Of a stretch of DNA of 64,000 nucleotides, positions 8,308 through 56,404 are shown one piece after another (position 1 is the first letter of the stretch; each line of letters starts with the position of its first letter). The stretch comes from Antechinus flavipes (taxonomy: Eukaryota), in the NCBI RefSeq assembly GCF_016432865.1, contig NC_067398.1, positions 678,094,001 through 678,158,000 of the forward strand, written 5' to 3'. The position numbers and the translations under genes are program-made. The notes beneath the pieces were generated by a model, which was not told the DNA's origin, ran no database searches, and saw nothing but the letters and a program-made list of their open reading frames with translations.

Positions 8308-8972
8308 GTAACTTCTACCATCTCAGGGAAGTCAGAGGCTCGGAGAGGGCTCAAGCCCAGATCAGCGGGGCAGCATTTTATTGCCATGAGTAAGACTATC
8401 TGCCATAGAAGGAGGCACGGGTACAGCTGTTCCATCCTTGTCCACAGATAAATCTGGGCTGGATCTAGCAGCATCTCCTGACCTACAGACACTGCCCAAA
8501 TCACTCCAGGAGAATCTGGACAGTGAAGAAGCCTTAGACTGACAGAATGACTTCCTAAATTACCTGAGGCAATGAGAGGAACCAAGCAAAATGCTCATGT
8601 GTGATATAGCTTGAGTTCACATCTGGGGACTTCTTTACTCCTCTTGGTAGCTTTTCTCCTTCAAAACTCCTGAAAGGAGGAACCTTTTGGCCTTAGTGCC
8701 CAAGGAGCTTTCCCTTCTTCTGGGCAAAAACTACACATCCTTATTCTTTTAAAATGCCAGGTAGCATCTTAAACACAACTGGTCCGAGGAAAAGGGGAAA
8801 CTTCAGCAAAAGGCTAGGAAGGATCAGAGATAAGACAAAGATACTCGTAGGGGTCTCTGTGAAACCTCATTTCAGGCTGCTTCATAAGGGACAAGTCTGT
8901 CTGCCTTGATTAGAGTCAGTGCTCAGGCAATGTGTGTTGACACAGGGATTGACTGACTTACCATTTCTACAG

Positions 8973-9074
8973 CAATTGGTGACAAGCAAGGTCCCAGTAC
9001 TCACAGTGCAGAGCTGCCTTCAACAGAAGGTCCCAGATCTCCAGTCAGTGAGCCCCTGCTGCCCACCACGCCAG
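8973..9074 (+). CDS. Array small exon S1, 102 nt (IGDKQGPSTHSAELPSTEGPRSPVSEPLLPTTP)
   Basis: gactgacttaccatttctacag| acceptor homologous to S2-S7; CCA G|GTTAGT donor; phase 1-1. Confidence 0.6.
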
Positions 9075-9677
9075 GTTAGTAAGAGTTACCCCTCTATGTG
9101 CAATGAAGGACAATGCCCATCTGTGCTCAGTTTTCTGCTTTGGGGGAGCTTTGCATTTCACAGATATTTGCGGTGCTCTTCTTGGTTCTTGCCTTTTTTA
9201 AGAGTTTTTGACTCTTGCTTTTTCTTGGGGACTGGAAAAAAGCACTGCTTCCTTTGGAAGATGGAGGGGATGTAAAGGGTTGTGCAGTGCTTTGCTACAA
9301 GTGGTTTTAGGACATGGCCTGGTTCATGCAAACAGGTGGACTGGAGGAAGTGCAGCTCAGAAGGGAAGGAGAGCATATATTAAAGAGGGCTCGGGACAAG
9401 TCTAGGAATACAGATTGCCAGTGGATAGAAGTCTGTAAAAGTGTATGTCAGTGTTGCAGAGGGGTTTGGGCTCAGGCACTGAGGGGAAGCTTATTGATGA
9501 AAATGCTTGTCCTGGAGAAGGTGTCATGATGAGCATGAAAGAAAGAGTGAATGGTGCAGCTTGGAACATTTTAGGTGTGTTTGTGTTTCACACACACAGA
9601 AGAAAAGATGGTCACAGGGTAATTTGCAGCTAGTCCATTAGTGTCTTGCTCCTGTGCCAACCAATGCCCTCTTTTAG

Positions 9678-12554
9678 ACACAGGGTTATCGAGCAGAAGC
9701 CCAGATGCCGTAGGTACGGGGCACGCATCCCCTGCCAGTGGAGAGGACCCGGAGCCCACCAGCCTGCCTGTGGTTGCATCCTCCATGGGAACCTCCACCT
9801 TTAGGAGCCCAGCAGTGACCGAGCCTGTAGAGACAGCTCCTGGCTCAGCCTCTGCTCAGGCCTCCAGCTTCCCTGTGGGCTCTGCCTCGGGGAGCCCAGC
9901 CCTGGACACCACCCCAGCCTCCATGTCTTCTCCGGTGACAGAGGACTCCAAATCCTTGGAGACTTCTGCCACCGGGACCATGGGCACTGACTCCCTGCCA
10001 CAGGTTCCTACTTCGGGGAAGCCACAGGCGGTTCCAGGCTCCAGCACTCCCTTCCCCTCCGGCTCCCAAGGGACAGTTTCTTCCCTTTTCCCCACGGCCA
10101 GCCCCAGTGCAGACACCACAGCAGCAAGGGAGCCTGACAGCACGGAGCCTGCAGACAGTCCCCCAGGGAGCTCCTTCCCTCCAGAGTTCTCGGCTTCAGG
10201 GCAAACTAGCAGCCACACTCTTTCCCCAGCTCCTTCTCACCCAGGCTTCCATAGCCAAGTCCCAGAGATGGTCCCCACATCCATCCCAATGCACACGGAG
10301 ACTTGGAGCACGGCAGGGAAGCCAGAAAGTGAGACGGGCCCTGGGGCCATTTCATCTGGGCCACCCTCCACTGGACTGAGTCAGTCGTCCTCCCCTGAAG
10401 CAGGAGGAGCAGCCACAGACACAACATCCATGGCAGGGAGCACAGGGACCTTGTTGTTGTCCATCAGTGTCCCTGTATCCACAGCGAGTTCGGGAACTCC
10501 CATCCCTACTAGAATGCCCAGCCCTTCCACGGGGAGCCTGGAGACCTCCTGGCCTGAGACAAGAACCTCCCCTTTCTCTCCCAATGTTGGCCATGGCACG
10601 GGCTCTGCCAGCACCCGGCTCCTCCCGTCGGCATCCCTGGCCACTGGGATACCTGTTGGTATGACTGGGCAGCCGTCTTTGGGGACCCCCATGCCCGAGG
10701 GGGGGGCCAGCGCTGCAGCTTCTCTTGCAACCTTCCCGCCCAGTGGGGGCACACAGAGAAGCACCGGCTGGGAGTCCAGCCCCTTCCTCCTGCATGAGCC
10801 CAGTCCCACAGGCTCTGAGACCACGAGGGACGTCTCTGGCTCCCGGCTTCCTGCACAGACTTCCACACTGAGACACGTCCCAGGTCCCACCGCGGGGCCC
10901 AGCACTGACACACCGGATCTTCCCCCCTGGGACCACAGCTCCAGTGTGCCAGTGACCATTGGTGGGGCTGAGACCCCCGCCGGGCTGGGGCCAAGGACCG
11001 CAGCTGGAGCCTCTGCCTCTAGTGACCCTCTTGCTCATCCTGGGGAAGGTGCAACGGTCTCATGGTTTTCTAGCCCAGCTGAGGCCGCCATGGGTGTGCT
11101 AAGCACCAGCCTGGATTGGCTCCGGATTCCCACAGTAGTCACCCCTGAAGCCCCCTCTGAGTCCAGCACTTTGGGGGATGGTGGGAGTTCTGCTGTCCCT
11201 GGTACTGAAAGGACAAAGCTGACTCCCAGCAGTCAGAGCACAGTCAGAAGGGCCACCCCTCCTGCCTCAGCTTCATCCGTGGAGATCCCAACCCGGGAAG
11301 GAGGGGCCGGGGCAGCTGCCTCAGTGACTGCCTCCCTGTCTGTAGATTCCACTCCCTCAGGCCCTGGTAATGGAGCCCCAGGTTCTGCCTCCTTGGCCAT
11401 TAGCTCCCCAGGGGATGGGAGTAGAACCTATGAGCTGTCAGCCACAGCCTCAGAGACCACCTCTCTTCATTCCCTGACCACGTCACCAGTGGAAGGTTCC
11501 ACCAGGGAAGTCCCAGCTACTGTGACAAGAGAGGGCACTGAAAGGAGACTCAGTCAAGAGCCCCCTACTAGCCCAGAAGTCATCCCAGTCTCCTCTAGGG
11601 ACACAGCTCCCACAGCGACAATCCATCTTCTGCAGGAGGTATCCCTTGGGCCAAGTACAGAAGGTCTGCCTGTCACTGACCTGCCAACAATGACTGAGAC
11701 CACATCCCCATCGGCCCCTGGGCTGGCTGCAGAAGCCAGCTCAGCTTCTCCTCTTGCTCCGGTCACACGGCTCAGCCCTTCTGCCACATCCCCCAAGTCC
11801 ACAGCAGAGACCCGTGGAGCATCTTGGGCCAGGACTGTTTCTTTGCGTCCCACCCACTTCATGACAGAGACCTCAAGGTCTGGGTTGCCCACCCACGCAG
11901 ACAGGGCTGTGTCCACCTTCTCAGAGAATGTCAGCGAGGAAACAGCTTCTATTTCAGCTGCTCCTTTGGTCACAGCAACAGGGTCCCTGGGGTCTACAGA
12001 GCAGGAGTCCAGCCCCACGCGATCAGGCCTGTCCACCACTGAGTGGAATGGTTCCAGTCTCAGCCCTCCTCTGACCAGCGTTTCCATCATCTCAGTTCCT
12101 AGCTCACAGTCCCCTTCCTCTGGCTCTGGGAGCAGCCCCCCAACGCCACCAGACACCAGCTTTGCCAATGCCCTGGACAGCAACTCATCCCCAGGGACCA
12201 GTCTTGTGTCTGTCCAGTCCTCAGAGGCTGCAGCAACTACTTCCGGGCTGTCACACTCCTACCCAGGCTCCTCGGCTGAGTTCATGCCCTCCTCCACTTC
12301 TTGGACCAAGAGCTCTGCACCTGGGATGGCCACATCCTCTGGGTCCCCTGTGACCTTTCCCATCACCACTGGGTCAGAGACGAACATCAAAGGGAGAACA
12401 GCAGGGCCATTCACACCATATTTAGAAAATACGGAGCCTCTGTGGACAACTGTCTCTTCGCACTCAGGGATCAGTCTCCCGGTGGACGTCTCTTCCCCAT
12501 CGGGTATTGTATGGGTTTTAGTTGCTGGTGTTTCCAGCTCGGTCCCATCCCTAT
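9678..12554 (+). CDS. Array large exon L1, 2877 nt
   Basis: ccctcttttag|AC acceptor; CTA T|GTGAGC donor at the position homologous to the ACA A|GTAAGC donor of L7; open. Confidence 0.8.
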
Positions 12555-13067
12555 GTGAGCATGAGCTTTGTCTTCCCCTTTGTGGAGGATCCCCTTGGAG
12601 TGGGGAGGGAGCTGGTCGATCTCTATTTGCCCTATGGTGGGAAGCAGCCATTTGTGTTGAAGACCCCAGGTATGTCTTGTTCTGGCAGTTCCTCCTCTTG
12701 AGCAGTTCCTCCCCATTGAGTGCTCTCCCTCCTGGTGTTCACTTTCAATCTGCCTCAGGTGGATGAGGGCAGTCTTGTGTTCTTTGTGCTGAAGTGCCCT
12801 TTGCCCTCTGGGGGGAAAATACATGTTCTCATTGAGGTCAGCTGGCTTGTGATGGAGGTAGAATGAATTTGGGGAGTGGGGGATGCCTCAGTCAGTATCT
12901 GGAAGGAAAGACGTGATCCTTGCAAGGCACAGCGTAGATCCATTGGAGAGCCAGCAGTCCCTTAGTCCCTACCTTTTGCTCCCTGACAGGTTTCAGATTC
13001 TCTGCTAGGGGACGTGGACCCTCAATGCTTGTTGGCTGGGGGATTGACTGACTTGCCCCTTTTACAG

Positions 13068-13181
13068 GAATGGATGAGAGCCTAAGTCCCAGCACCCAGA
13101 GTGCAGATCTACCCTCACCTGCACGTCCCAGATCTCCTGCTAGCGAGCCTATGGTGCCGACCATGCCAGCCACTGTTGCAG
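13068..13181 (+). CDS. Array small exon S2, 114 nt (MDESLSPSTQSADLPSPARPRSPASEPMVPTMPATVA)
   Basis: ccttttacag|GA acceptor; GCA G|GTAAGA donor; phase 1-1. Confidence 0.85.
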
Positions 13182-13826
13182 GTAAGAAAGACTCAGCCCT
13201 CTGCTTACAATCCTCCTCCTCGATTCAGTTTCCCACTTTGGGGGCATTCTGCATCTCAGGGACATTTGTGGGGCTCTTCTCAGAACCTGGAGATTGTGTG
13301 CCATTATCCTTGTGTCTTCCTTGCCTTCTTTTGGGGAAGTCTTTGCCTCCTTCTCTATTTCTTTGATATTGCACATCTGGCCTGCTTCCTTCTGGAAGAT
13401 GGAGGGGAAACAGAAGTTTACCAAGACGATTTGAGGAGAGGGCTTGGCCATAAATAGAGGGCATTTGCCAGGCTGCCCTGAATAAGGCAAAGAGGAGCCC
13501 TATCAGAAGCGATCTGGGCCATTGAGAGGTGAATGAGCTTAGAGACCAAGTCTCTCTCCGCCTGCAGCAGGGTGGGTCAGCGTCAGACTTGCACTCAGGC
13601 TCACAGTCTCCTAGAAGAAGTTGTGTGAGGAAAGTGCTTGCCCTGCAGGATGTTCCATGGCAAGTGTGGGAGGGAGAATGAATGGTGGAGTCTGGAGCCC
13701 TGGAGAGGGGAGCATCCATCTTTCTCACTGAGAGGAACCTTGAATGGAGCCATGAGGGTGACTGTGGGTCATTCGCAGGTAGCCCACTAGAGCCCTGCTC
13801 CTGTGCCAACCAATGCCCTCTTTTAG

Positions 13827-16681
13827 ATACAGGGTTATCGAGCAGAAGCCCAGATGCCATAGGTACGGGGCACGCATCCCCTGCCAGCGGAGAGGACCCG
13901 GAGCCCACCAGCCTGCCTGTGGTTGCATCCTCCATGGGAACCTCCACCTTTAGGAGCCCAGCAGTGACCGAGCCTGTAGAGACAGCTCCTGGCTCAGCCT
14001 CTGCTCAGGCCTCCAGCTTCCCTGTGGGCTCTGCCTCAGAGAGTCCAGCCCTGGACACCACCAAGGCCTCCATGTCCTCTCCAGGGACAGAGGACCCCAA
14101 ATCCTTGGAGACTTCTGCCACTGGGACGATGGGCACTAGTTCCCTGCCACAGGCTCCTACCCCAGGGAAGCCACAGGTGGTTCCAGGCTCCAGCGCTCCC
14201 CGCCCCTCCGGCTCCCAAGGGACAGTTTCCTCCCTTTCCCCCACGACCAGCCCCAGTGCAGACACCACAGCAGTAAGGGAGCCTGACAGCACGGAGCCTG
14301 CAGACAGTCCCCCAGGGAGCTCCTTCCCTCCGGAGTTCTCGGCTTCAGGGCAAACTAGCAGCCACACTCTTTCCCCAGCTCCTTCTCACACAGGCTTCCA
14401 TAGCCAAGTCCCAGAGATGGTCCCCACATCCATCCCAATGCACACGGGGACTTGGAGCACGGCAGGGAAGCCAGAAAGTGAGACGGGCCCTGGAGCCATT
14501 TCATCTGGGCCGCCCTCCACTGGCCTGAGTCAGTCGTCCTCCCCTGAGGCAGGAAGAGCAGCCATGGACACAACATCCATGGCAGGGAGCACAGGGACCT
14601 CATTATTGTCCATCAGTGTCCCTGTATCCACAGCGAGTTCGGGAACTCCCATCCCTACTAGAATGCCCAGCCCTTCCACGGGGAGCCTGGAGACCTCCTG
14701 GCCTGAGACAAGGACCTCCCCTTTCTCTCCCAATGTTGGCCATGGCATGGGCTCTGCCAGCACCCGGCTCCTCCCGTCGGCATCCCTGGCCACTGGGATA
14801 CCTGTTGGTACGACTGGGCAGCCATCTTTGGGGACCCCCATGCCCGAGGGGGGGGGCAGTTCTGCGGCTTCTCTTGCAACCTTCCCGCCCAGTGGGGGCA
14901 CACAGAGAAGCACTGGCTGGGAGTCCAGCCCCTTCTTCCTGCATGAGCCCAGTCCCACAGGCTCTGAGACCACGAGGGACGTCTCTGGCTCCCGGCTTCC
15001 TGCACAGACTTCCACACTGAGACACGTCCCAGCTCCCACCGCGGGGCCCAGCACTGACACACCGGGTCTTCCCCCCTGGGACCACAGCTCCAGTGTGCCA
15101 GTGACCATTGGTGGGGCTGAGACCCCCTCCGGGCTGGGGCCAAGGACCGCAGGTGGAGCTTCTGCCTCTAGTGACCCTCTTGCTCATCCTGGGGAAGGTG
15201 CAACGGTCTCATGGTTTTCTAGCCCAGCTGAGGCCGCCATGGGTGTGCTAAGCTCCAGCCTGGATTGGCTCCGGATTCCCACAGTAGTCACCCCTGAAGC
15301 CCCCTCTGAGTCCAGCACCCTGGGGGATGATGGGAGTTCTTCTGTCCCTGGTATTGAAAGGACAAAGCTGCCTCCCAGCAGTCAGAGCACAGTCAGAAGG
15401 GCCACCCCTCCTGCCTCACCCTCACCTGTGGAGATCCCAACCCGGGAAGGAGGGGCCGGGGCAGCTGCCTCAGTGACTGCCTCCCTGCCTGTAGATTCCA
15501 CTCCCTCAGGCCCTGGGAGTGGAGCCCCAGGTTCTGCCTCCTTGGCCATTAGCTCCCCAGGGGATGGGAGTAGAACCTATGAGCTGTCAGCCACAGCCTC
15601 AGAGACCACCTCCCTTCATTCCCTGACGATGTCACCAGTGGAAGTTTCCACCAGGGAAGTCCCAGCTACTGTGACAAGAGAGGGCACTGAAGGGACATTG
15701 AGTCAAGAGCTCCCTACCAGCCCAGGAGACATCCCAGTCTCCTCTAGGGACACAGCTCCCACAGCGACAATCCATCTTCTGCAGGAGGTATCCCTTGGGC
15801 CAAGTACAGAAGGTCTGCCTGTCACTGACCTGCCAACAATGACTGAGACCACATCCCCATCGGCCCCTGGGCTGGCTGCAGAAGCCAGCTCAGCTTCTCC
15901 TCTTGCTCCGGTCACACGGCTCAGCCCTTCTGCCACATCCACCAAGTACACAGCAGAGACCTTTGGAGCATCTTGGGCTGGGACCGTTTCTTTGGGCCCC
16001 ACCAACTTCATGACAGAGACCTCACGGTCTGGGCTGGCCACCTACAAAGACAGGGTTGTGTCCACCTTCTCAGAGAATGTCAGGAAAGAAACAGCTTCTA
16101 CTTCAGCTTCTCCTTTGGTCACAGCAACAGGGTCCCTGGGGTCTACAGAGCAGGAGTCCAGCCCCATGCAATCAGGCTTGTCAACCAGTGAGGAATGGAA
16201 TGGTTCCAGTCTCAGCCCTCCTCTGACCAGCGTTTCCATCACCTCAGCTCCTAGCTCACAGTCCCCTTCCTCTGGCTCTGGGAGCAGCCCCCCAATGGCA
16301 CCAGACACCAGCTTTGCCAGTGCCCTGGACAGCACCTCGTCCCCAGGAGCTACCCTTGTACCTGTGCAGTCCTCAGAGGCCACAGCGACTACTTCCGGTC
16401 TGTCACATTCCAACCCAGATTCCTCGGCTGCATTCATGACCTCCTCTGATTGGACCCAGAGCTCTGCACCAGGGATGGCCATATCCTCCGGGTCCCCTGT
16501 GACTTTTTCCACCACCACTCAGATATTAATAGGGCCTTTCACACCAGCGTTGAGAGACATGGAGGCCCTGTGGACATCTCTCCCTTCACACTCAGGGAGC
16601 AGCCTCACAGTGGATGTCTTTTCCCCATCGGGTACAGTCTGGGTTTCAGTCCCGGGTGCTTTGAGCTTAGCTCATCCCCAT
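13827..16681 (+). CDS. Array large exon L2 (3' end uncertain)
   Basis: Acceptor as L1; open frame. Homologous GTGAGC donor at 16682 is out of phase because of a 1-bp deletion. In-phase alternatives end at 16631 or 16715. Confidence 0.7.
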
Positions 16682-17139: not shown

Positions 17140-17253
17140 GAATGGGTGAGAGCCTAAGTCCCAGCACCCAGAGTGCAGATCTACCCTCACCTACACGTCC
17201 CAGATCTCCTGCTAGCGAACCCATGGTGCCGACCATGCCAGTCACTGTTGCAG
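17140..17253 (+). CDS. Array small exon S3, 114 nt
   Basis: tttttacag|GA ... GCA G|GTAAGA; open; phase 1-1. Confidence 0.85.
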
Positions 17254-17958: not shown

Positions 17959-20900
17959 ATACAGGGTTATCGAGCAGAAGCCCAGATGCCATAGGTACGG
18001 GGCACGCATCCCCTGTCAGCAGAGAGGACCCGGAGCCCACCAGCCTGCCTGTGGTTGCATCCTCCATGGGAATCTCCACCTTTAGGAGCCCAGCAGTGAC
18101 CGAGCCTGTAGAGACAGCTCCTGGCTCAGCCTCTGCTCAGGCCTCCAGCTTCCCTGTGGGCTCTGCCTCAGAGAGTCCAGCCCTGGACACCACCAAGGCC
18201 TCCATGTCTTCTCCGGTGACAGAGGACCCCAAATCCTTGGAGACTTCTGCCACCAGGACGATGGGCACTGGCTCCCGGCCAAAGGCTCCTATCCCGGGGA
18301 AGCCGCAGGTGGTTCCAGGCTCCAGCGCTCCCCGCCCCTCCGGCTCCCAAGGGACAGTTTCCTCCCTTTCCCCCATGGCCAGCCCCAGTGCAGACACCAC
18401 AGCAGCAAGGGAGTCTGACAGCACGGAGCCTGCAGACAGTCCCCCAGGGAGCTCCTTCCCTCCGGAGTTCTCGGCTTCAGGGCAAACTAGCAGCCACACT
18501 CTTTCCCCAGCTCCTTCTCACACAGGCTTCCATAGCCAAGTCCCAGAGATGGTCCCCACATCCATCCCAATGCGCATGGGGACTTGGAGCACGTCAGGGA
18601 GGCCGGAAAGTGAGACGGGCCCTGGAGCCATTTCATCTGGGCCACCCTCCACTGGCCTGAGTCAGTCGTCCTCCCCTGAAGCAGGAGGAGCAGCCACAGA
18701 CACAACATCCATGGCAGGGAGCACAGGGACCTCGTTATTGTCCATCAGTGTCCCTGTATCCACAGCGAGTTTGGGAACTCCCATCCCTTCTAGAATGCCC
18801 AGCCCTTCCACGGGGAGCCTGGAGACCTCCTGGCCTGAGACAAGGACCTCCCCTTTCTCTCCTGGTGTGGTCCACATGGGCCACAGCACGGGCTCTGCCA
18901 GCACCCGGCTCCTCCCGTCGGCATCCCTGGCCACTGGGATACCTGTTGGTACGACTGGGCAGCCGTCTTTGGGGACTCCCATGCCCGAGGGGGGGGCCAG
19001 TTCTGCGGCTTCTCTTGCAACCTTCCCACCCAGTGGGGGCACACAGAGCAGTGCGGGTGGGGAGTCCAGCCCCTTCCTCCTGCATGAGCCCAGTCCCACA
19101 AGCTCTGAGACCACGATGGATGTCTCTGGCTCCCGGCTTCCTGCACAGACTTCCACACTGAGACACGTCCCAGCTCCCACCGTGGGGCCCAGCACTGACA
19201 CACCGGGTCTTCCCCCCTGGGACCACAGCTCCAGTGTGCCAGTGACCATTGGTGGGGCTGAGACCCCCTCCGGGCTGGGGCCAAGGACCGCAGCTGGAAC
19301 TTCTGCCTCTAATGACCCTCTTGCTCATCCTGGGGAAGGTACAACGGTCTCATGGTTTTCTAGCCCAGCTGAGGCCGCCATGGGTGTGCTAAGCTCCAGC
19401 CTGGATTGGCTCCGGATTCCCACAGTAGTCACCCCTGAAGCCCCCTCTGAGTCCAGCACCCTGGGGGATGATGGGAGTTCTTCTGTCCCTGGTATTGAAA
19501 GGACAAAGCTGCCTCCCAGCAGTCAGAGCACAGTCAGAAGGGCCACCCCTCCTGCCTCAGCTTCATCCATGGAGATCCCAACCCGGGAAGGAGGGGCTGG
19601 CGCAGCTGCCTCAGTGACTGCCTCCCTGCCTGTAGGTTCCACTCCCTCAGGCCCTGGGAGTGGAGCCCCAGGTTCTGCCTCCTTGGCCATTAGCTCCCCA
19701 GGGGAGGGGAGTAGAGCCCATGAGCTGTCAGCCACAGCCTCAGAGACCACCTCCCTTCATTCCTTGACCACGTCACCAGTGGAAGTGTCCACCAGGGAAG
19801 TCCCAGCTACTGTGACAAGAGAGGGCACTGAAAGGAGACTCAGTCAAGAGCCCCCTACTAGCCCAGAAGTCATCCCAGTCTCCTCTAGGGACACAGCTCC
19901 CACAGGGACAAGCCCCCTTCTGCAGGAGGTATCCCTTGGGCCAAGTACAGAAGGTCTGCCTGTCACTGACCTGCCAACAATGACTGAGACCATATCCCCA
20001 TCGGCCCCTGGGCCGGCTGCAGAAGCTAGCTCAGCTTCTCCTCTTGCTCCGGTCACATGGCTCAGCCTTTCTGCCACATCCCCCAAGTCCACAGCAGAGA
20101 CCCGTGGAGCATCTTGGGCCAGGACTGTTTCTTTGGGCCCAACCCACTTCATGACAGAGACCTCAAGGTCTGGGCTGGCCACCTATGAAGACAGGGTTGT
20201 AGCCACCTTCTCAGAGAAGACCAGTGGGGAAACAGCTTCCATTTCAGCTTCTCCTCTTGCTCCGGTCACATGGCTCAGCCCTTCTGCCACATCCCCCAAG
20301 TCCACAGCAGAGACCCTTGGAGCATCTTGGGCCGAGACCGTTTCTTTGGGCCCCACCAACTTTACGACAGAGACCTCAAGGTCTGGGCTGGCCACCCACG
20401 CAGACAGGGCTGTGTCCACCTTCTCAGAGAATGTCAGCGAGGAAACAGCTTCTACTTCAGCTGCTCCTTTGGTCACAGCAACAGGGTCCCTCGGGTCTAC
20501 AGAGCAGGAGTCCAGCCCCACGCGATCAGGCATGTCTACCACTGAGGAGTGGAATGGTTCCAGTCTCAGCCCTCCTCTGACCCGCGTTTCCATCACCTCA
20601 GCTCCTAGCTCACAGTCCCCTTCCTCTGGCTCTGGGAGCAGCCCCCCAACGGCACCAGACACCAGCTTTGCCAATGCCCTGGAGAGCACCTCGTCCCCAG
20701 GGACCAGTCTTGTGTCTGTCCAGTCCTCAGAGGCCGCAGCAACTACTTCCGGGCTGTCACACTCCTACCCAGGCTCCTCGGCTGAGTTCATGCCCCCCTC
20801 CACTGCTTCGACCAAGAGCTCTGCACCTGGGATGGCCACATCTTCCAGGTCCCCTGTGACCTTTCCCATCACCACTGCGTCAGAGACAAATTCCAAAGGG

Positions 20901-21060
20901 AGAACAGCAGGGCCATTCACACCATATTTAGGAAATACGGAGCCTCTGTGGACAACTGTCTCTTCGCACTCAGGGATCAGTCTCCCGGTGGACGTCTCTT
21001 CCCCATCGGGTATTGTATGGGTTTTAGTCGCTGGTGTTTCCAGCTCGGTCCCATCCCCAT
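17959..21060 (+). CDS. Array large exon L3, 3102 nt (contains a 213-nt duplication)
   Basis: cttttag|AT acceptor; CCA T|GTGAGC donor; open. Confidence 0.8.
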
Positions 21061-21573: not shown

Positions 21574-21687
21574 GAATGGGTGAGAGCCTAAGTCCCAGCA
21601 CCCAGAGTGCAGATCTACCCTCACCTGCACGTCCCAGATCTCCTGCTAGCGAGCCCATGGTGCCGACCATGCCAGCCACTGTTGCAG
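21574..21687 (+). CDS. Array small exon S4, 114 nt
   Basis: tttttacag|GA ... GCA G|GTAAGA; open. Confidence 0.85.
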
Positions 21688-22392: not shown

Positions 22393-24714
22393 ACACAGGG
22401 TTATCGAGCAGAAGCCCAGATGCCATAGGTACGGGGCACGCATCCCCTGTCAGCGGAGAGGACCCGGAGCCCACCAGCCTGCCTGTGGTTGCATCCTCCA
22501 TGGGAACCTCCACCTTCAGGAGCCCAGCAGTGACCGAGCCTGTAGAGACAGCTCCTGGCTCAGCCTCTGCTCAGGCCTCCAGCTTCCCTGTGGGCTCTGC
22601 CTCAGAGAGTCCAGCCCTGGACACCACCAAGGCCTCCATGTCCTCTCCAGGGACAGAGGACCCCAAATCCTTGGAGACTTCTGCCACCAGGACGATGGGC
22701 ACTGGCTCCCGGCCAAAGGCTCCTACCCCGGGGAAGCCGCAGGCAGTTCCAGGCTCCAGCACTCCCCTTCCCTCCGGCTCCCAAGGGACAATTTCCTCCC
22801 TTTCCCCCATGGCCAGCCTCAGTGCAGACACAGCAGCAAGGGAGTCTGACAGCACGGAGCTTGCAGACAGTCCCCCAGGGAGCTCCTTCCCTCCGGAGTT
22901 CTCGGCTTCAGGGCAAACTAGCAGCCACACTCTTTCCCCAGCTCCTTCTCACACAGGCTTCCATAGCCAAGTCCCAGAGATGGTCCCCACAGCCATCCCA
23001 ATGCACACGGGGACTTGGAGCACAGCAGGGAGGCCGGAAAGTGAGACGGGCCCTGGAGCCATTTCATCTGGGCCACCCTCCACTGGCCTGAGTCAGTCGT
23101 CCTCCCCTGAGGCAGGAAGAGCAGCCATGGACACAACATCCATGGCAGGGAGCACAGGGACCTCGTTATTGTCCATCAGTGTCCCTGTATCCACAGCGAG
23201 TTCGGGAACTCCCATCCTTACTAGAATGCCCAGCCCTTCCACGGGGAGCCTGGAGACCTGGTCTGAGACAAGGACCTCCCTTTTCTCTCCTGGTGGGGTC
23301 CACACAGGCCGCAGCACGGGCTCTGCCAGCACCCTGGGGGAAGGAGGGAGTTCTGCTGTCCCTGGTACTGAAAGGACAAAGCTGACTCCCAGCAGCCAGA
23401 GCACAGTCAGAAGGGCCACCCCTCCTGCCTCAGCTTCATCAGTGGAGCTCCCAACCCGGGAAGGAGGGGCCGGGGCAGCTGCCTCAGTGACTGCCTCCCT
23501 GCCTGTAGGTTCCACTCCCTCAGGCCCTGGGAGTGGAGCCCCAGGTTCTGCCTCCTTGGCCATTAGCTCCCCAGGGGAGGGGAGTAGAGCCCATGAGCTG
23601 TCAGCCACAGCCTCAGAGACCACCTCCCTTCATTCCTTGACCACGTCACCAGTGGAAGTGTCCACCAGGGAAGTCCCAGCTACTGTGACAAGAGAGGGCA
23701 CTGAAAGGAGACTCAGTCAAGAGCCCCCTACTAGCCCAGAAGTCATCCCAGTCTCCTCTAGGGACACAGCTCCCACAGGGACAAGCCCCCTTCTGCAGGA
23801 GGTATCCCTTGGGCCAAGTACAGAAGGTCTGCCTGTCACTGACCTGCCAACAATGACTGAGACCACATCCCCATCGGCCCCTGGGCCGGCTGCAGAAGCC
23901 AGCTCAGCTTCTCCTCTTGCTCTGGTCACACAGCTCAGCCCTTCTGCCACATACCCCAAGGCCCTGTCAGAGACCCTTGGAGCTTCTTGGGCTGGGACTG
24001 TTTCTTTGGGCCCCACCAACTTCATGACAGAGACCTCACGGTCTGGGCTGGCCACCTACAAAGACAGGGTTGTAGCCACCTTCTCAGAGAATGTCAGCAA
24101 GGAAACAGCTTCTACTTCAGCTGCTCCTTTGATCACAGCAACAGGGTCTCTGGGGTCTGCAGAGCAGGAGTCCAGCCCCACGCAATCAGGCCTGTCCACC
24201 ACTGAGGAGTGGAATGGTTCCAGTCTCAGCCCTCCTCTGACCCGCATTTCCATCACCTCAGCTTCTAGCTCACAGTCCTCTTCCTCTGGCTCTTGGAGCA
24301 GCCTCCCAACGGCACCAGACACCAGCTTTGCCAATGCCCTGGAGAGCACCTCATCCCCAGGGACCAGTCTTGTGTCTGACCAGTTCTCAGAGGCCGCAGC
24401 GACTACTTCCGGGCTGTCACACTCCAACCTAGGCTCCTCGGCTGAGTTCATGCCCTTCACTGCTTGGACCAAGAGCTCTGCACCTGGGATGGCCACATCT
24501 TCCGGGTCCCCTGTGACCCTTCCCATTACCACTGAGGCAGAGAGGAACACCAAAGGGAAAACAGCAGGGCTATTCACCACATCAAGAGACATGGAGCCCC
24601 TGTGGACATCTTTCCCTTCACACTCAGGAATCAGCCTCCCAGTGGATGTCCCTTCCCCATCGGGTACTGTCTCGGTTTCAGTCCCTGGTGCTTTGAGCTT
24701 AGCCCTGTCCCCAC
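22393..24714 (+). CDS. Array large exon L4 (555-nt deletion type; 3' end uncertain)
   Basis: Acceptor intact; open frame. Homologous donor reads C|CTGAGC (GT lost). An in-phase alternative ends at 24663. Confidence 0.7.
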
Positions 24715-25213: not shown

Positions 25214-25327
25214 GAATTGATGAGAGCCTAAGTCCCAACACCCAGAGTGCAGATCTACCCTCATCTGAACCTCCCAGATCTCCTGCTAGCGAGCCCATGG
25301 TGCCGACCCCGCCAGCCACTGTTGCAG
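25214..25327 (+). CDS. Array small exon S5, 114 nt
   Basis: ccttttttcag|GA ... GCA G|GTCAGT; open. Confidence 0.8.
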
Positions 25328-26002: not shown

Positions 26003-28891
26003 ACACAGGGTTATCGAGCAGAAGCCCAGATGCCGTAGGTACGGGGCACGCATCCCCTGCCAGCGGAGAGGACCCGGAGCCCACCAGCCTGCCTGTGGTT
26101 GCATCCTCCATGGGAACCTCCACCTTTAGGAGCCCAGCAGTGACCGAGCCTGTAGAGACAGCTCCTGGCTCAGCCTCTGCTCAGGCCTCCAGCTTCTCTG
26201 TGGGCTCTGCCTCAGGGAGCCCAGCCCTGGACACCACCCCAGCCTCCATGTCTTCTCCGGTGACAGAGGACCCCAAATCCTTGGAGACTTCTGCCACTGG
26301 GACAATGGGCACTGACTCCCGGCCAAAGGCTCCTACCCCAGGGAAGCCGCAGGTGGTTCCAGGCTCCAGCACTCCCCTCCCCTCCGGCTCCCAAGGGACA
26401 GTTTCCTCCCTTTCCCCCATGGCCAGCTCCAGTGCAGACACCACAGCAGCAAGGGAGTCTGACAGCACGGAGCCTGCAGACAGTCCCCCAGGGAGCTCCT
26501 TCCCTCCGGAGTTCTCGGCTTCAGGGCAAACTAGCAGCCACACTCTTTCCCCAGCTCCTTCTCACCCAGGCTTCCATAGCCAAGTCCCAGAGATGGTCCC
26601 CACAGCCATCCCAATGCACACGGGGACTTGGAGCACAGCAGGGAGGCCGGAAAGTGAGACGGGCCCTGGAGCCATTTCATCTGGGCCACCCTCCACTGGC
26701 CTGAGTCAGTCGTCCTCCCCTGAGGCAGGAGGAGCAGCCACAGGCACGGCCTCCATGGCAGGGAGCACAGGGACCTCGTTATTGTCCATCAGTGTCCCTG
26801 TATCCACAGCGAGTTCGGGAACTCCCATCCCTACTAGAATGCCCAGCCCTTCCACGGGGAGCCTGGAGACCTCCTGGCCTGAGACAAGGACCTCCCCTTT
26901 CTCTCCTGGTGTGGTCCACAAGGGCCACAGCATGGGTTCTGCCAGCACCTGGCTCCTCCCGTCGGCATCCCTGGCCACTGGGATACCTGTTGGTACGACT
27001 GGGCAGCCGTCTTTGGGGACCCCCATGCCCAAGGGGGGGGCCAGCGCTGCAGCTTCTCTTGCAACCTTCCCGCCCAGTGGGGGCACACAGAGAAGCACCG
27101 GCGGGGAGTCCACCCCCTTCCTCCTGCATCAGCCCAGTCCCACAGGCTCTGAGACCACGAGGGACGTCTCCGAATCTCGGCTTCCTGCACAGACTTCCAC
27201 ACTGAGACACGTCCCAGGTCCCACCGCGGGGCCCAGCACTGACACACCGGATCTTCCCCCCTGGGACCACAGCTCCAGTGTGCCAGTGACCATTGGTGGG
27301 GCTGAGACCCCCTCCGGGCTGGGGCCAAGGACCACAGGTGGAGCTTCTGCCTCTAGTGACCCTCTTGCTCATCCTGGGGAAGGTGCAACTGTCTCATGGT
27401 TTTCTAGCCCAGCTGAAGCCGCCATGGGTGTGCTAAGCACCAGCCTGGATTGGCTCCGGATTCCCACAGTAGTCACCCCTGAAGCCCCCTCTGAGTCCAG
27501 CACCCTGGGGGATGGTGGGAGTTCTGCTGTCCCTGGTACTGAAAGGACAAAGCTGACTCCCAGCAGTCAGAGCACAGTCAGAAGGGCCACCCCTCCTGCC
27601 TCAGCTTCATCCATGGAGATCCCAACCCGGGAAGGAGGGGCCGGGGCAGCTGCCTCAGTGACTGCCTCCCTGCCTGTAGATTCCACTCCCTCAGGCCCTG
27701 GTAATGGAGCCCCAGGTTCTGCCTCATTGGCCATTAGCTCCCCAGGGGATGGGAGTAGAACCTATGAGCTGTCAGCCACAGCCTCAGAGACCACCTCCCT
27801 TCATTCCTTGACCACATCATCAGTGGAAGGTTCCACTAGGGAAGTCCCAGCTACTGTGAGAAGAGAAGGCACCAAAGGGGGACTCAGTCAAGAGCCCCCT
27901 ACTAGCCCAGAAGACATCCCAGTCTCCTCTAGGGACACAGCTCCCACAGGGACAAGCCCCCTTCTGCAGGAGGTATCCCTTGGGCCAAGTACAGAAGCTC
28001 TGCCTGTCACTGACCTGCCAACAATGACTGAGACCACATCCCCATCGGCCCCTGGGCCGGCTGCAGAAGCCAGCTCAGCTTCTCCTCTTGCTCCGGTCAC
28101 ACGGCTCAGCCCTTCTGCCACATCCCCCAAGTCCACAGCAGAGACCTTTGGAGCATCTTGGGCTGGGACCGTTTCTTTGGGCCCCACCAACTTCATGACA
28201 GAGACCTCACGGTCTGGGCTGGCCACCTACAAAGACAGGGTTGTAGCCACCTTCTCCGAGAAGATCAGTGGTGAAACAGCTTCCGTTTCAGCTTCTCCTT
28301 TTGTCACAGCAACAGGGTCCCTGGGGTCTACAGAGCAGGAGTCCAGCCCCACGCGATCAGGCTTGTCCACCACTGAGGAGTGGAATGGTTCCAGTCTCAG
28401 CCCTCCTCTGACCCGCGTTTCCATCACCTCAGCTCCTAGCTCACAGTCCCCTTCCTCTGGCTCTGGGAGCAGCCCCCCAATGCCACCAGACACCAGCTTT
28501 GCCAATGCCCTGGAGAGCACCTCGTCCCCAGGGACCAGTCTTGTGTCTGTCCAGTCCTCAGAGGCCGCAGCGACTACTTCCGGGCTGTCACACTCCTACC
28601 CAGGCTCCTCGGCTGAGTTCATGCCCCCCTCCACTGCTTGGACCAAGAGCTCTGCACCTGGGATGGCCACATCTTCCAGGTCCCCTGTGACCTTTCCCTT
28701 CACCACTGGGTCAGAGACAAACTCCAAAGGGAGAACAGCAGGGCCATTCACACCATATTTAGGAAATACGGAGCCTCTGTGGACAACTGTCTCTTCGCAC
28801 TCAGGGATCAGTCTCCCGGTGGACGTCTCTTCCCCATCGGGTATTGTATGGGTTTTAGTCGCTGGTGTTTCCAGCTCGGTCCCATCCCCAT
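26003..28891 (+). CDS. Array large exon L5, 2889 nt
   Basis: cttttag|AC ... CCA T|GTGAGC; open; phase 1-1. Confidence 0.8.
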
Positions 28892-29404: not shown

Positions 29405-29518
29405 GAATGGGTGAGAGCCTAAGTCCCAGCACCCAGAGTGCAGATCTACCCTCACCTGCACGTCCCAGATCTCCTGCTAACGAGCCCATGGTGCCGACCA
29501 TGCCAGTCACTGTTGCAG
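29405..29518 (+). CDS. Array small exon S6, 114 nt
   Basis: tttttacag|GA ... GCA G|GTAAGA; open. Confidence 0.85.
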
Positions 29519-30224
29519 GTAAGAAAGACTGAGCCCTCTGCTTACACTGGGGAACAATCCTCCTCTGTTCAGTTTCCCACTTTTGGGGCATTCTTCATCT
29601 CAGGGACACTTGTGGGGCTCTTCTCAGTTCTTGCAGATTATATGCCATTATCCTTGTCTCTTCATTGCCATCTTTGGGGGAAGTCTTTGCCTTTCTCTCT
29701 GTTTCTTTGGGATTGTACATCAGGCCTGCTTCCTTTTTAGAACATGGAGGGGAAGCAAAGTATGGTTTCTCCACTGCCTTTTTAAGACATTGCTAGGAGA
29801 GTTCTTGACTATAGATAAATAGTCGTCATTTGTCCATTTGCCCTGGCTAAGCCAACGAAGGGGACTGTAGGAGCTGTTCTGGGCAACTGAGAGGTGAATG
29901 AGGACATATGGAAAAGGTCAGGACAGACTCAGGGATAGAGAAGGTCAGTCTCTTTCTGCCTGCAGCAGGGTGGGTCAGCGTCAGACTTGCACTCAGGCTC
30001 ACAGTCTCCTAGAAGAAGTTGTGTGAGGAAAGTGCTTGCCCTGCAGGATGTTCCATGGCAAGTGTGGGAGGGAGAATGAATGGTGGAGTCTGAAGCTTTG
30101 GAGAGGGGAGCATCCGTCTTTCCCACTGAGAGGAACCTTGAATGGAGCCACGAGGGTGACTGTGGGTCATTCGCAGGTAGCCCACTAGAGCCCTGCTCCT
30201 GTGCCAACCAATGCCCTCTTTTAG

Positions 30225-32555
30225 ACACAGGGTTATCGAGCAGAAGCCCAGATGCCATAGGTACGGGGCACGCATCCCCTGTCAGCGGAGAGGACCCGGA
30301 GCCCACCAGCCTGCCTGTGGTTGCATCCTCCATGGGAATCTCCACCTTTAGGAGCCCAGCAGTGACCGAGCCTGTAGAGACAGCTCCTGGCTCAGCCTCT
30401 GCTCAGGCCTCCAGCTTCCCTGTGGGCTCTGCCTCAGAGAGTCCAGCCCTGGACACCACCAAGGCCTCCATGTCCTCTCCAGGGACAGAGGACCCCAAAT
30501 CCTTGGAGACTTCTGCCAACGGGACGATGGGCACTGGCTTCCGGCCACAGGCTCCTACCCCAGGGAAGCCACATGCGGTTCCAGGCTCCAGCACTCCCCT
30601 TCCCTCCGGCTCCCAAGGGACAGTTTCCTCCCTTTCCCCCATGGCCAGCCCCAGTGCAGACACCACAGCAGCAAGGGAGTCTGACAGCATGGAGCCTGCA
30701 GACAGTCCCCCAGGGAGCTCCTTCCCTCCGGAGTTCTCGACTTCAGGGCAAACTAGCAGCCACACTCTTTCCCTAGCTCCTTCTCAAGCAGGCTTCCATA
30801 GCCAAGTCCCAGAGATGGTCCCCACAGCCATCCCAATGCACACGGGGACTTGGAGCACAGCAGGGAGGCCGGAAAGTGAGATGAGGCCTGGAGCCATTTC
30901 ATCTCGGCCGCCCTCCACTGGCCTGAGTCAGTCGTCTTCCCCTGAGGCAGGAGGAGCAGCCACGGACACAACATCCATGGCAGGGAGCACAGGGACCTCG
31001 TTATTGTCCATCAGTGTCCCTGTATCCACAGCGAGTTCAGGAACTCCCATCCCTACTAGAATGCCCAGCCCTTCCACGGGGAGCCTGGAGACCTGGTCTG
31101 AGACAAGGACCTCCCTTTTCTCTCCTGGTGGGGTCCACACAGGCCGCAGCACGGGCTCTGCCAGCACCCTGGGGGAAGGAGGGAGTTCTGCTGTCCCTGG
31201 TACTGAAAGGACAAAGCTGACTCCCAGCAGCCAGAGCACAGTCAGAAGGGCCACCCCTCCTGCCTCAGCTTCATCAGTGGAGATCCCAACCCGGGAAGGA
31301 GGGGCCGGGGCAGCTGCCTCAGTGACTGCCTCCCTGCCTGTAGGTTCCACTCCCTCAGGCCCTGGGAGTGGAGCCCCAGGTTCTGCCTCCTTGGCCGTTA
31401 CCTCCCCAGGGGAGGGGAGTAGAGCCCATGAGCTGTCAGCCACAGCCTCAGAGACCACCTCCCTTCATTCCCTGACCATGTCACCAGTGGAAGGTTCCTC
31501 CAGGGAGATCCCAGCTACTGTGACAAGAGAGGGCACTGAAGGGACATTGAGTCAAGAGCTCCCTACCAGCCCAGGAGACATCCCAGTCTCCTCTAGGGAC
31601 ACAGCTCCCACAGGGACAAGCCCCCTTCTGCAGGAGGTATCCCTTGGGCCAAGTACAGAAGCTCTGCCTATCACTGACCTGCCAACAATGACTGAGACCA
31701 CATCCCCATCGGCCCCTGGGCCAGCTGCAGAAGCCAGCTCAGCTTCTCCTCTTGCTCCGGTCACACGGCTCAGCCCTTCTGCCACATCCCCCAAGTCCAC
31801 AGCAGAGACCTTTGGAGCATCTTGGGCTGGGACCGTTTCTTTGGGCCCCACCAACTTCATGACAGAGACCTCAAGGTCTGGGCTGGCCACCTACAAAGAC
31901 AGGGTTGTAGCCACCTTCTCCGAGAAAATCAGTGGTGAAACAGCTTCCGTTTCAGCTTCTCCTTTTGTCACAGCAACAGGGTCCCTGGGGTCTACAGAGC
32001 AGGAGTCCAGCCCCACGCGATCAGGCCTGTCCACCATTGAGGATTGGAATGGTTCCAGTCTCAGCCCTCCTCTGACCAGCATTTCCATCACCTCAGTTCC
32101 TAGCTCACAGTCCCCTTCCTCTGGCTCTTGGAGCAGCCCCCCAATGGCACCAGACACCAGCTTTTCCGATGCCCCAGACAGCACCTCGTCCCCAGGAGCC
32201 ACCCTTGTCTCTGTCCAGTCCTTAGGGCCTGCTGTGACTACTCCTGGGCCGTCAAACTCAAGCCCAGGCTCCTCGGCTGAGTTCATGCCCTCCTCCACTG
32301 CTTGGACCAAGAGCTCTGCACCAGGCATGGTCACATCCTCCAGGTCTCCTGTGACCTTTTCCATCTCAATGGGCTCAGAGAAGAACATGAAAGGGAGAAC
32401 AGCAGGGCTATTCACACCATATCTAGGAGATACGGTTTCCCTGTGGACAACTGTCTCTTCGCAGTCAGGGACCAGTCTCCCAGTGGATGTCTCTTCCCCT
32501 TTGGGTAATATATGGGTTTTAGTCACCCTTGTTTCTAGCTCAGCCCCATCCCCAC
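30225..32555 (+). CDS. Array large exon L6, 2331 nt (555-nt deletion type)
   Basis: cttttag|AC ... CCA C|GTGAGC; open; phase 1-1. Confidence 0.8.
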
Positions 32556-33074
32556 GTGAGCATAACCTTTGTCTTCCCCTTTGTGGAGGATTCACTTGGA
32601 CTGGGGAGAGGGCTGGTCAAATCCTTTCTGTTCTATGGTGGGAAGCAGCCATTTGTGCTGGAGACCCCAGGTATGCCTTGTTCTAGGCGTTCCTCCTCTT
32701 GAGCGGTTTCTCCCCCTTGAGTGTTCTCCTTCCTGGTGGTCACTTTCGATCTGCCCCTGGTGGTTGAGGACAGTCTTGTGTTCTTTGTGCTGAAGTGCTC
32801 CTTGACCTCTGGGAGGAAATTGCATGTTCTCTTTGAGGTCAGCTGGCTTGTGAAGAAGGTAGAATGGATTTGTGGAGTGGGGGACACCTCAGTCAGTATC
32901 TGGAAAGGAAGGCGTGATCCTTGTAAGGCACAGCAAAGATCCATTGGAAAGTCAGTAGGCCCTTAGGCTCTTTTTAAGTTGCTTCCCATCTGATAGGTCT
33001 CAAAGTCTCTGCTAGGGGACGTGGACCTTCAATGATTGTTGGCCAGGGGATTGACTGATTTGCCCTTTTTACAG

Positions 33075-33188
33075 GAATGGGTGAGAGCCTAAGATTCAGC
33101 ACCCAGAGTGCAGATCTACCCTCATCTACAGGTCCCAGATCTCCTGCTAGTGAGCCCATGGTGCCGACCACGCCAGTCACTGTTGCAG
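33075..33188 (+). CDS. Array small exon S7, 114 nt
   Basis: tttttacag|GA ... GCA G|GTAAGA; open. Confidence 0.85.
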
Positions 33189-33890
33189 GTAAGAATGACT
33201 GAGCCCTCTGCTTACACTGGAGGACAATCCTCCTCCTCTATTCAGTTTCTCGCTGTGGGGACATTCTGTATCTCAGGGACATTTGTGGGGCTCTTCTTGG
33301 TTCTTGGAGATTGCACGCCATTATTCTTGTGTCTTCCATGCCTTCTTTGGGGGAAGTCTGTGTCTCCTTCTCTATGTCTTTGCGATAAGAAATCAGGCCT
33401 GCTTCCTTCTGGACAATGGAGGGGAAGCAGAAGTTTATCCAGAGTCTTGCCCAAGGCGATTTGAGGAGAGGGCTTGGCCATAAATAGAGGGCATTTGCCA
33501 GGTTGCCCTGGACAAGACAAAGAGGGGACCTGCCAGAAGTCATATGGGCCATTGAGTGATGGATGAGAATGTGCAGAAAAGGGTCTCAGAAAACCTTAAA
33601 GGATAGAGAAGGCTTGTCTCTCTCTGCCTGTAGCAGTGTGGGTCAGCATCAGACTTGGGCTTGGGCTCATAGTCTCCCTGAGGAAGCAGTAAGGACAGTG
33701 CTTGCCCAGGAGGAGGATCTATGGTGAGCATGGGAGGGTGAATGAATAGTGGAGTCTGGTGCTTTGGAGAGGGGAGCATCCATCTTTCCCACTGAGAGGA
33801 ATCGTGAATGGAGCCACGAGGGTGACTGTGGGTCATTCGCAGGTAGCCCACTAGAGCCCTGCTCCTGTGCCAACCAATGCCCTCTTTTAG

Positions 33891-35582
33891 ACACAGGGTT
33901 ATCGAGCAGAAGCCCAGATGCCGTAGGTACGGGGCACGCATCCCCTGCCAGCGGAGAGGACCCGGAGCCCACCAGCCTGCCTGTGGTTGCATCCTCCATG
34001 GGAACCTCCACCTTTAGGAGCCCAGCAGTGACTGAGCCTGTAGAAACAGCTCCTGGCTCAGCCTCTGCTCAGGCCTCCAGCTTCCCTGTGGGCTCTGCCT
34101 CAGGGAGCCCAGCCCTGGACACCACCCCAGCCTCCATGTCTTCTCCGGTGACAGAGGACCCCAAATCCTTGGAGACGTCTACCACTGAGACCATGGGCAC
34201 TGATTCCCTGCCACAGGTTCCTATTTCGGGGAAGCCGCAGGCGGTTCCAGGCTCCAGCACTCCCCTCCCCTCCGGCTCCCAAGGGACAGTTTCCTCCCTT
34301 TCCCCCATGGCCAGCCCCAGTGCAGAGACCACAGCAGCAAGGGAGTCTGACAGCACGGAGCCTGCAGACAGTCCCCCAGGGAGCTCCTTCCCTCCGGAGT
34401 TCTCGGCTTCAGGGCAAACTAGCAGCCACGCTCTTTCCCCAGCTCCTTCTCACCCAGGCTCCTCTAGCCCAGTCCCAGAGATGGTCCCCACATCCATCCC
34501 AATGCACACAGGGACTTCGAGCATGGCAGGGAGGCCAGAAAGTGAGACGGGGCCTGAAGCCAGCTCAGCTGGGCTGCCCTCCACTGGCCTGAGTCAGTCG
34601 TCCTCCCCTGAGGCAGGAGGAGTAGCCATGGGCACGGCCTCCATGGCAGGGAGCACAGGCTCCTCATTATTGTCCAGCAGTGTCCCTGTATTCACAGCGG
34701 GTTTGGAAAACTCCATCACTCCCAGAATGCCCAGCCCTTCTATGGGGAGCCTGGAGACGACCTGGCCTGAGAAAAGAACCTCCCCTTTCTCTCCTGGTGT
34801 GGTCCACATGGGCCACAGCATGGGCTCTGCCAGTACCCAGCTCCTCCCGTCTGCATCCCTGGCCCCTGGAATGCCTGTTGCCACGATTGGGCAGCTATCT
34901 TTGGGGACCCCTATGCCTGAGGAGGTGGCCAGTTCTGCGGCTTCTCTTGAAAGCTTCCCGCCCAGTGCAGGCACACAGAGCAGCACCGGCAGAGAGTCCA
35001 TCCCCTTCTTCCTGCATGAGCCCAGTCCCGCAGGCTCTGAGAGAACAGGCCTTACCGCAGCATCAGGGACCGGCCTCACCTTCAGCCCTCCCATCCTCCA
35101 GACTACAACTTCCATAAGCACAAATCCTGGATTAGCAACAAGTTTATCTATTTTAATGAGTGGCCAGCCAATGGCACCAGACATGAGCATTCCAAGCCTT
35201 CCCAGCGATACTTTCACTAAGACTTCCAGTCTTGCCTCTAGCCGTTCCCCAGAAGCTGAGACCCCCAGCCAAGCTAATGTGTCTCCAAACCTCAGTCCAG
35301 ACTCCTCACCTCTGTTCCCCCAACACACCTCCTGGACAAGCTCGTCTTCACTTTGGATTTCTCCTTCCTCAATGTCCCCACTGACAATCACCACCCCTGG
35401 GTCAAGGAAGAGCACAGAAGATACTACAGTACCAACAGTCTCCCCATCTTCAGATAACATAAAGACAGTCTGGCCATCCATCTCTCCCTACCCAGAAGCC
35501 ACACCTGCAGTGAGCTTTATTCCTCAAGGAGGTACAGTCCCTTTTGCAGGCCCTTCTTTTGCTACCTTCACTGTATTCACAA
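33891..35582 (+). CDS. Array large exon L7, 1692 nt (chimeric terminal unit)
   Basis: cttttag|AC ... TTC ACA A|GTAAGC; open; diverges from L1-L6 after ~35040. Confidence 0.85.
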
Positions 35583-40620: not shown

Positions 40621-40717
40621 GAACTGCAGGTAAAAAATATAAACCTCCATTTTCCCTTTCTCAGATGGATGGGTATTCAGTCCACCTGGGACTTCTCTAG
40701 GGCAAAATCCATTTCTT

Positions 40718-56290: not shown

Positions 56291-56404
56291 GTGGTGATGC
56301 TGGTGTTGTGCCGGTCACACATGCCTCAGGCCATGGAGTACCAGGAAGCATAGCAGCACTGACCAGAGGTCCTCTGATACCTAGGTCTACTCTTATTCCC
56401 ACAG
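56291..56404 (+). CDS. Small exon, 114 nt (GDAGVVPVTHASGHGVPGSIAALTRGPLIPRSTLIPT), GC donor
   Basis: ctctccctgcag|GT ... ACA G|GCAAGT; phase 1-1. Confidence 0.7.

Follow-up and report, generated by a model that had tools for sequence, protein, structure and literature searches.

Multi-kilobase intragenic arrays, mucin domains spread over many exons and concerted evolution are all already known as kinds. The locus described here lies in a stretch of 64,000 nucleotides (nt; hereafter the window) from the marsupial Antechinus flavipes (NCBI RefSeq assembly GCF_016432865.1, contig NC_067398.1, positions 678,094,001 to 678,158,000, forward strand), which is the N-terminal mucin region, with a high content of proline, threonine and serine (PTS), of the antechinus orthologue of MUC16 (CA125). 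Within it, a doublet of one small and one giant exon is repeated seven times together with its introns. From comparison of the sequences, this array is probably old, under concerted evolution and selected for an open reading frame, rather than freshly amplified.

Among the closest described systems is MUC16 of placental mammals and chicken, which likewise has a very long, cysteine-free Ser/Thr/Pro N-terminal region followed by many SEA repeats, a membrane helix and a short tail. In human, this N-terminal region is ~12,000 amino acids (aa) long (PMC4046138), and in mouse Muc16 the frame would shift if the very large exon 3 were skipped (PMC2650410). The antechinus gene differs from known MUC16 in that its unit sequence has relatives in marsupials only (5 clusters among 1.84 billion representatives), and in that its PTS region is cut into many exons of phase 1-1 with a homogenised tandem core.

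Outside this gene, the kringle IV type 2 (KIV-2) region of LPA is an intragenic tandem array with a unit of 5.5-5.6 kilobases (kb) containing two exons with their introns (PMC11515395, PMC6314250). As in LPA, the antechinus unit is a piece of gene structure of several kb that stays in frame, and the number of units sets the length of the protein. Units of KIV-2 differ very little from each other and vary strongly in copy number between individuals, but the antechinus units are not nearly identical throughout (exons 89-95%, most introns 72-87%, with some tracts at 98-100%). In addition, the product of the antechinus unit is a disordered mucin spacer instead of a folded domain. In chicken Muc13, the PTS domain is made of many repeat-unit exons, and the authors proposed that alternative splicing sets its length (PMC1552070); the antechinus repeat is instead a doublet of a 38-codon and a ~760-1020-codon exon, in a different gene. 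With concerted tandem arrays in general, the locus shares paralogues that are closer than orthologues, patchy tracts of identity, diverged edges and a raised GC content in the part that exchanges. The mechanism is not new, but its substrate, giant PTS exons within one gene, is particular to antechinus MUC16. The locus is assembled in full and can serve as a clear example of the way in which a giant mucin may grow, with exon-intron doublets duplicating in tandem, exchange keeping the units alike, and selection requiring no more than an open frame and a content of Ser/Thr/Pro.

Structure of the array

A repeat self-search of the window finds seven head-to-tail copies in register (units U1 to U7), with starts 4149, 4132, 4434, 3610, 4222 and 3666 nt apart. 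Each unit is 3.6-4.4 kb long and has its parts in the same order: a small exon, an intron of 0.6-0.7 kb, a giant exon rich in serine, threonine and proline, and an intron of 0.5 kb. An initial annotation of this DNA had described a sevenfold tandem exon doublet, introns included, and the seven copies in register with matching splice sites bear this out. All exons lie on the forward strand. Six of the small exons are 114 nt (38 codons) long and flanked by ag and gt: U2 at 13068-13181, with the strong donor CAG/gtaaga (the slash marks the exon end), U3 at 17140-17253, U4 at 21574-21687, U5 at 25214-25327, U6 at 29405-29518 and U7 at 33075-33188. The small exon of U1 (8973-9074), an old copy at the 5' edge, is shorter (102 nt), ~75% like the others and an exact match to residues 1347-1379 of the gene model XP_051831793.1. 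The giant exons are found at 9678-12503 (U1, 2826 nt), 13827-16631 (U2, 2805 nt), 17959-21009 (U3, 3051 nt), 22393-24663 (U4, 2271 nt), 26003-28840 (U5, 2838 nt), 30225-32504 (U6, 2280 nt) and 33891-35531 (U7, 1641 nt; hereafter exon 7). Small-to-giant introns are 603-706 nt long, giant-to-small introns 508-570 nt, and all array introns together come to 8.06 kb. Every array exon is a multiple of three in length and, when read across the junctions, all introns are in phase 1, i.e., the exons are of phase 1-1. XP_051831793.1 matches the window residue for residue and has acceptors and donors exactly as in the array, which gives independent support for the exon boundaries.

Continuous strong likeness extends from 9617 to 35042, equal to ~6.2 units of ~4.1 kb (blastn of unit 2 against the window; find_repeats families D1-D20), and on this comparison the block is taken as the homogenised core of the array. 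The array has six full doublets; in a seventh, only the first 1.15 kb of the giant exon resemble the other units. The small exon and first intron of U1 and the 3' third of exon 7 are edges of the array that are old and have diverged. The array had first been placed at 8940-35040; an array is present there, but exon 7 runs on to 35531 and the strongly alike block begins at 9617. If every exon is used, splicing all seven doublets in would add 6166 aa, so the arithmetic behind an earlier figure of about 6,000 aa is right.

Divergence between the units

The giant exons are 89-95% identical in pairwise comparison, with a synonymous divergence (dS) of 0.06-0.15 that is below the divergence of most introns. 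Small-to-giant introns are 79-87% identical in most pairs and 98-99% identical among U3, U4 and U6, while giant-to-small introns are 72-87% identical in most pairs and 99.6% identical between U3 and U5, and come in two old types that are 22-27% apart. At the protein level, U1-U6 share 85-92% of their residues with each other and 81-85% with exon 7, and this is not above the 89% found between antechinus and Tasmanian devil for neighbouring orthologous giant exons. Against this background there are tracts that are nearly identical: 1036 nt with 9 mismatches between U3 and U5, 966 nt with 12 mismatches and 391 nt with none between U3 and U4, and 734 nt with 7 mismatches between U4 and U6. As these tracts join different partners at different places, the array is a mosaic and does not reflect a simple history of nested duplications.

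Length differences also cross the units. U4 and U6 share a shortening of ~185-186 codons relative to U5. (A 630-nt deletion seen in the first alignment was an artefact of aligning the unique tail of exon 7; the true difference is 186 codons.) The giant exon of U3 has a private 213-nt (71-codon) tandem duplication at 20031-20468, the two copies of which are 89% alike, and this is about the divergence between different units. Its origin may thus lie in an exchange of two units out of register, and not in slippage inside a single unit.

The edges of the array have decayed. On the 5' side, the small exon and intron of U1 are 60-75% alike to the other copies (the intron alone, at 9075-9677, ~60-66%). 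On the 3' side, the likeness of exon 7 to the other units falls from 96% to 76% and is undetectable past 35042. Further on, in the intron after exon 7, a relic of an eighth unit is found at 37096-39011 on the forward strand, consisting of three collinear pieces that are ~60% like the giant exon and contain no open frame, with a faint blastn hit at 37168-37317.

Youth cannot be deduced from the likeness of the units. The array was initially described as young and as formed by unequal crossing-over. The second part is supported by signs of unequal exchange, namely the length difference shared by U4 and U6, the 71-codon duplication in U3 and the tracts at 99-100%. The recency is not supported as stated: most introns are only 72-87% alike, exon dS is 0.06-0.15, the edges are decayed and units are present in other marsupials (see below), so that only patches of 0.4-1 kb at 99-100% remain to fit the description.

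The unit in other marsupials

Database searches were run with individual exons. An exhaustive HMMER search with the unit finds marsupial sequences only, and its five clusters are from Tasmanian devil (two), koala, opossum and bilby. An old devil model (P0001) includes three or more giant exons of the unit type and also the exon-7 type; in newer devil models, which begin inside the array, there is a single full unit, along with two small exons that differ from each other and the exon-7 type. In the koala model the order is unit, small exon, exon-7 type, two small exons and the next giant exon, and the opossum model has the upstream giant exon and then, ~127 residues later, the unit. On the evidence of these models, the doublet and its neighbours would be as old as the marsupial radiation. 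The doublet and the exon-7 type would then have been present before the split of dasyurids and koala, with several units in Tasmanian devil. The devil lies outside the pair formed by Antechinus and Murexia. The date of that pair (PMC9290055) gives a bound of >11 Ma for the divergence of Antechinus from the devil's genus, in which several units are present; the split of Dasyuridae and Didelphidae is put at ~72 Ma (PMC9290055).

Exchange between units and the age of the array

In a tree of the giant exons, the antechinus units cluster in a single clade, separate from those of the devil (support 95/99). Exon 7 has a positional orthologue in devil, where all 554 aa can be aligned at 81% identity between the same neighbours, and another in koala. 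Despite this, the 5' 320 aa of exon 7 group with the antechinus units (support 96/99), and a tree that joins this part with the devil exon-7 type is rejected (approximately unbiased (AU) test, p=0.0027, for a grouping that was chosen after the tree had been seen). In the lineage of antechinus, at least this exon has thus been replaced by sequence from neighbouring units, and for this reason the species-wise grouping says nothing on the date of the copies.

Base composition follows the same boundaries. GC content at third codon positions (GC3) is 0.57-0.59 in the array giant exons and 0.39-0.46 in the gene's remaining giant exons, and GC is 0.50 in the array introns and 0.39-0.46 in the flanking introns. 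Inside exon 7, GC3 is 0.63 in the homogenised 5' 1.15 kb and 0.45 in the 3' 0.5 kb, with the step at the homology boundary at 35042. This step is a possible footprint of GC-biased gene conversion, with the bias as a putative cause. Together, the grouping of exon 7 by species and a GC3 step within one exon would be direct footprints of conversion. We infer that unequal crossing-over and gene conversion, the latter probably GC-biased, keep copying sequence between units. The long core exons would be copied most, and both edges, which have drifted or decayed, least.

One alternative is a recent burst of unequal crossing-over in this lineage, in which one or two doublets became seven while the devil amplified its own independently, and the array would today be a variable number tandem repeat that differs in copy number. 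Such a burst would give the single antechinus clade, and it is in line with the single full unit in the koala and opossum models, with the tracts at 99-100% and with the fact that the array introns contain no unit-specific insertion of >38 nt. We regard it as unlikely. The introns are mostly 72-87% identical, with two old types among those that follow the giant exon, and at the protein level U1-U6 are no more alike than neighbouring orthologous exons are between antechinus and devil. As exon 7 groups by species despite orthologues in devil and koala, such a grouping does not date the copies. The decayed edges and the relic unit also speak against a recent burst.

Several points weigh against an old, concerted array, in addition to the late choice of the grouping in the AU test. 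Intron divergence is possibly inflated by alignment noise. The high GC content could partly be caused by a protein rich in proline, alanine and glycine, though this is not what GC3 and intron GC suggest. There is one full unit each in the koala and opossum models, and unit counts outside antechinus come from gene models that end at the array and may skip or merge units. Much of the gain in copy number could thus be specific to dasyurids, or even partly to antechinus.

Falsely duplicated copies in an assembly are expected to be near-identical, whereas here the divergence between units is 5-8% for exons and 13-28% for most introns, and each has indels of its own. Several units are also present in devil models from two assemblies. 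The antechinus genome was assembled with wtdbg2 from PacBio continuous long reads (CLR), and with noisy reads of this kind tracts of ~1 kb at 99% could mislead on the exact number of units; coverage was ~100x and the contig N50 is 52 Mb (PMC9290055). That the array or its copy number is a mis-assembly is, on balance, highly improbable.

Selection on the reading frame

The coding frame of the giant exons of U1-U6 is free of stops, while every one of the five remaining frames contains 6-38. The array-like part of exon 7 is also free of stops, and all seven giant exons are open in the coding frame. Based on 596 substitutions relative to the unit consensus in six exons, and on a share of 1.9% for random changes that would make a stop, 11.3 stops are expected and none is observed (P ~1e-5), though this expectation counts shared changes more than once, so that there are fewer independent events than it assumes. 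All indels in exons are of whole codons (1, 3, 7, 71 and 185 aa), and only 3/13 and 4/17 of intron indels are multiples of three. Both earlier claims about the frame, that the seven large exons are stop-free with large indels in multiples of three and that selection acts on the frame, are confirmed by these counts.

Pairwise dN/dS among the giant exons is 0.5-0.9, i.e., constraint is weak on residues and strong on the frame. Selection would keep the giant exons open and in frame while tolerating most amino acid changes, with length and Ser/Thr content outweighing the exact sequence. This fits a putative function as an O-glycosylated spacer. Private single-base changes are distributed unevenly: U1, U3 and U5 have 42 synonymous and 49 non-synonymous changes, and U2, U4 and U6 have 33 and 83 (Fisher p=0.009, for an odd/even grouping made post hoc and with much of the excess in the last 120 codons, beside the diverged intron). 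This suggests more constraint on U1, U3 and U5, and the changes in U2, U4 and U6 fit neutrality. Positive selection on the even-numbered units had appeared possible from a first omega >1, but when only codons with a single change are counted, it is indistinguishable from neutral.

Use of the giant exons

XP_051831793.1 includes all seven small exons but only the giant exons of U1, U5 and U6; those of U2, U3, U4 and U7 are absent from it. Devil isoforms also differ in their inclusion of exon 7 and other giant exons. On a rough position matrix, the donors of the seven array giant exons score -0.7 to -2.2 and are weak, compared to 4.6-7.0 for the small exons and 3.8 for the upstream giant exon. 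Their sequences are CGG/GTATTG, CGG/GTACAG (as in U2), CGG/GTACTG (as in U4), TGG/GTAATA and GAG/GTACAG, so that the seven have a common in-phase form, G/GTAYWG or GTAATA.

A disabled canonical donor in units 2 and 4 was considered and rejected, since the GT of the in-phase RefSeq donor is kept in all units: G/GT follows 12503, 16631, 21009, 24663, 28840 and 32504. There is a second GT 5 nt downstream, which reads GTATGG in U1, U3 and U5 and is changed in U2, U4 and U6. Splicing at this second GT would not keep the phase, and the frame would meet a stop within the small exon.

From the RefSeq model, one could conclude that only some units are live, that the giant exons of U2, U3, U4 and U7 are silent pseudo-exons or rare cassettes, and that the protein gains far fewer than 6,000 aa. 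The variable devil isoforms, the contrast between weak giant-exon and strong small-exon donors, and the neutral private changes in U2, U4 and U6 as opposed to the constraint in U1, U3 and U5 (the same post hoc grouping) agree with this. However, no giant exon has a stop or a frameshift, where at a stop fraction of 0.0189 ~6.7 stops would be expected in U2, U4 and U6 alone; AG and GT are kept at every splice site; and Gnomon models are unreliable in near-identical repeats. On balance, this reading is improbable.

As all exons are of phase 1-1, any combination of them stays in frame. It is conceivable, although we hold it only tentatively, that the giant exons are selectable cassettes, which would give a length ladder of MUC16 by splicing in steps of ~550-1020 residues, and that copy number also tunes the height of the glycocalyx. 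If they are cassettes, unequal exchange would add or remove them between individuals. Should either the splicing or the copy-number idea hold, marsupial MUC16 would be tractable for studying how the length of a mucin is set.

Gene identity and annotation

In the PTS region of the window, small exons (34-40 codons) alternate with giant exons (0.5-1.3 thousand codons). Serine makes up 21%, threonine 13.5% and proline 12% of the six full giant exons, which lack cysteine, and the combined fraction of the three residues is 0.40-0.47 in every giant open frame of the window. The PTS exons show no significant Pfam match (one sub-threshold hit is due to chance), and neither do four related PTS-only gene models; a word search with the unit exon and a search of Rfam gave no match.

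The identity of the gene comes from gene models of antechinus and devil. XP_051831793.1, which RefSeq calls "mucin-17-like", maps exactly to 1543-56409 of the window. Another model from this antechinus chromosome, P0011 (4178 aa), begins at 61790 and extends on the forward strand to the end of the window at 64000. This model has 19 SEA stretches (Pfam PF01390, 1590 bits), and its C-terminus has a 28-residue hydrophobic stretch, i.e., a membrane helix, and then a 27-residue basic tail, which we take to be like the tail of human MUC16. Multiple SEA domains are a hallmark of MUC16 (PMC1552070). The devil mucin-16 models (XP_031804144.1, KAM9095535.1) are collinear with the exons of the window at 74-100% aa identity, matching in the same order exon 7, four small exons (41691, 43312, 51478, 56293) and three giant exons (~44.6, 52.4 and 61.6 kb), and the collinear devil models also carry PF01390. 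A word search with the devil protein as query returned the NCBI entry "mucin-16 [Sarcophilus harrisii]", devil "SEA domain-containing" models and antechinus "mucin-17-like". With 19 SEA domains, a membrane helix, a tail and collinearity with devil mucin-16, the window belongs to MUC16.

The RefSeq annotation splits this one gene, as XP_051831793.1 ends at 56409 and the SEA model from 61790 has a spurious intron (61898-62281). A single mucin-16 model unites these exons in devil. The name "mucin-17-like" is probably wrong, and the annotation should be corrected so that this model and the neighbouring SEA-domain model form one MUC16 gene. The RefSeq model also omits four open giant exons of the array and one downstream.

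Two further giant PTS exons of MUC16 flank the array on the forward strand. The upstream one, at 4739-7280, is orthologous to the segment of the opossum model directly before the opossum copy of the unit. Its sequence contains an internal 0.75-kb duplication (4869-5638 against 6069-6790, 75% identity). The downstream one ends at 48502, with an approximate start at ~44441-44615, and is 89% identical to devil mucin-16 in amino acids.

Other repeats in the window

It had been claimed that the array is free of short and long interspersed elements (SINEs and LINEs) while both flanks are rich in them. Self-comparison of the window, made without a repeat library and so covering this claim in part only, detects no dispersed repeats in the array, and the array introns align with one another with no unit-specific insertion of >38 nt; to this extent the contrast is real. 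The array is 70% exon with very short introns, which largely accounts for the difference; the flanking introns are AT-rich and 1.7-6.2 kb long. Dispersed repeat pairs of ~170-210 nt are located in the downstream flank, at 40712-40914 and 61185-61392 (opposite strands), 41246-41429 and 42468-42643, and 56272-56439 and 60539-60706. These are probably SINE-type elements.

An older repeat family is also found downstream of the array. Giant exons at ~44441-48502, ~52219-55860 (or, more narrowly, 52420-55812) and 61643-64000 are 63-70% alike, with a spacing of 7.8-9.4 kb and long introns. Two partial copies of this family are located in the intervening introns (50280-50977 and 58677-59061). Their open frames are 85, 71 and 95 codons long, and they are possibly exons in decay. 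Finally, an intron upstream of the array contains a minisatellite at 3820-4262, with 8.1 copies of a 55-nt unit and 98% matches.

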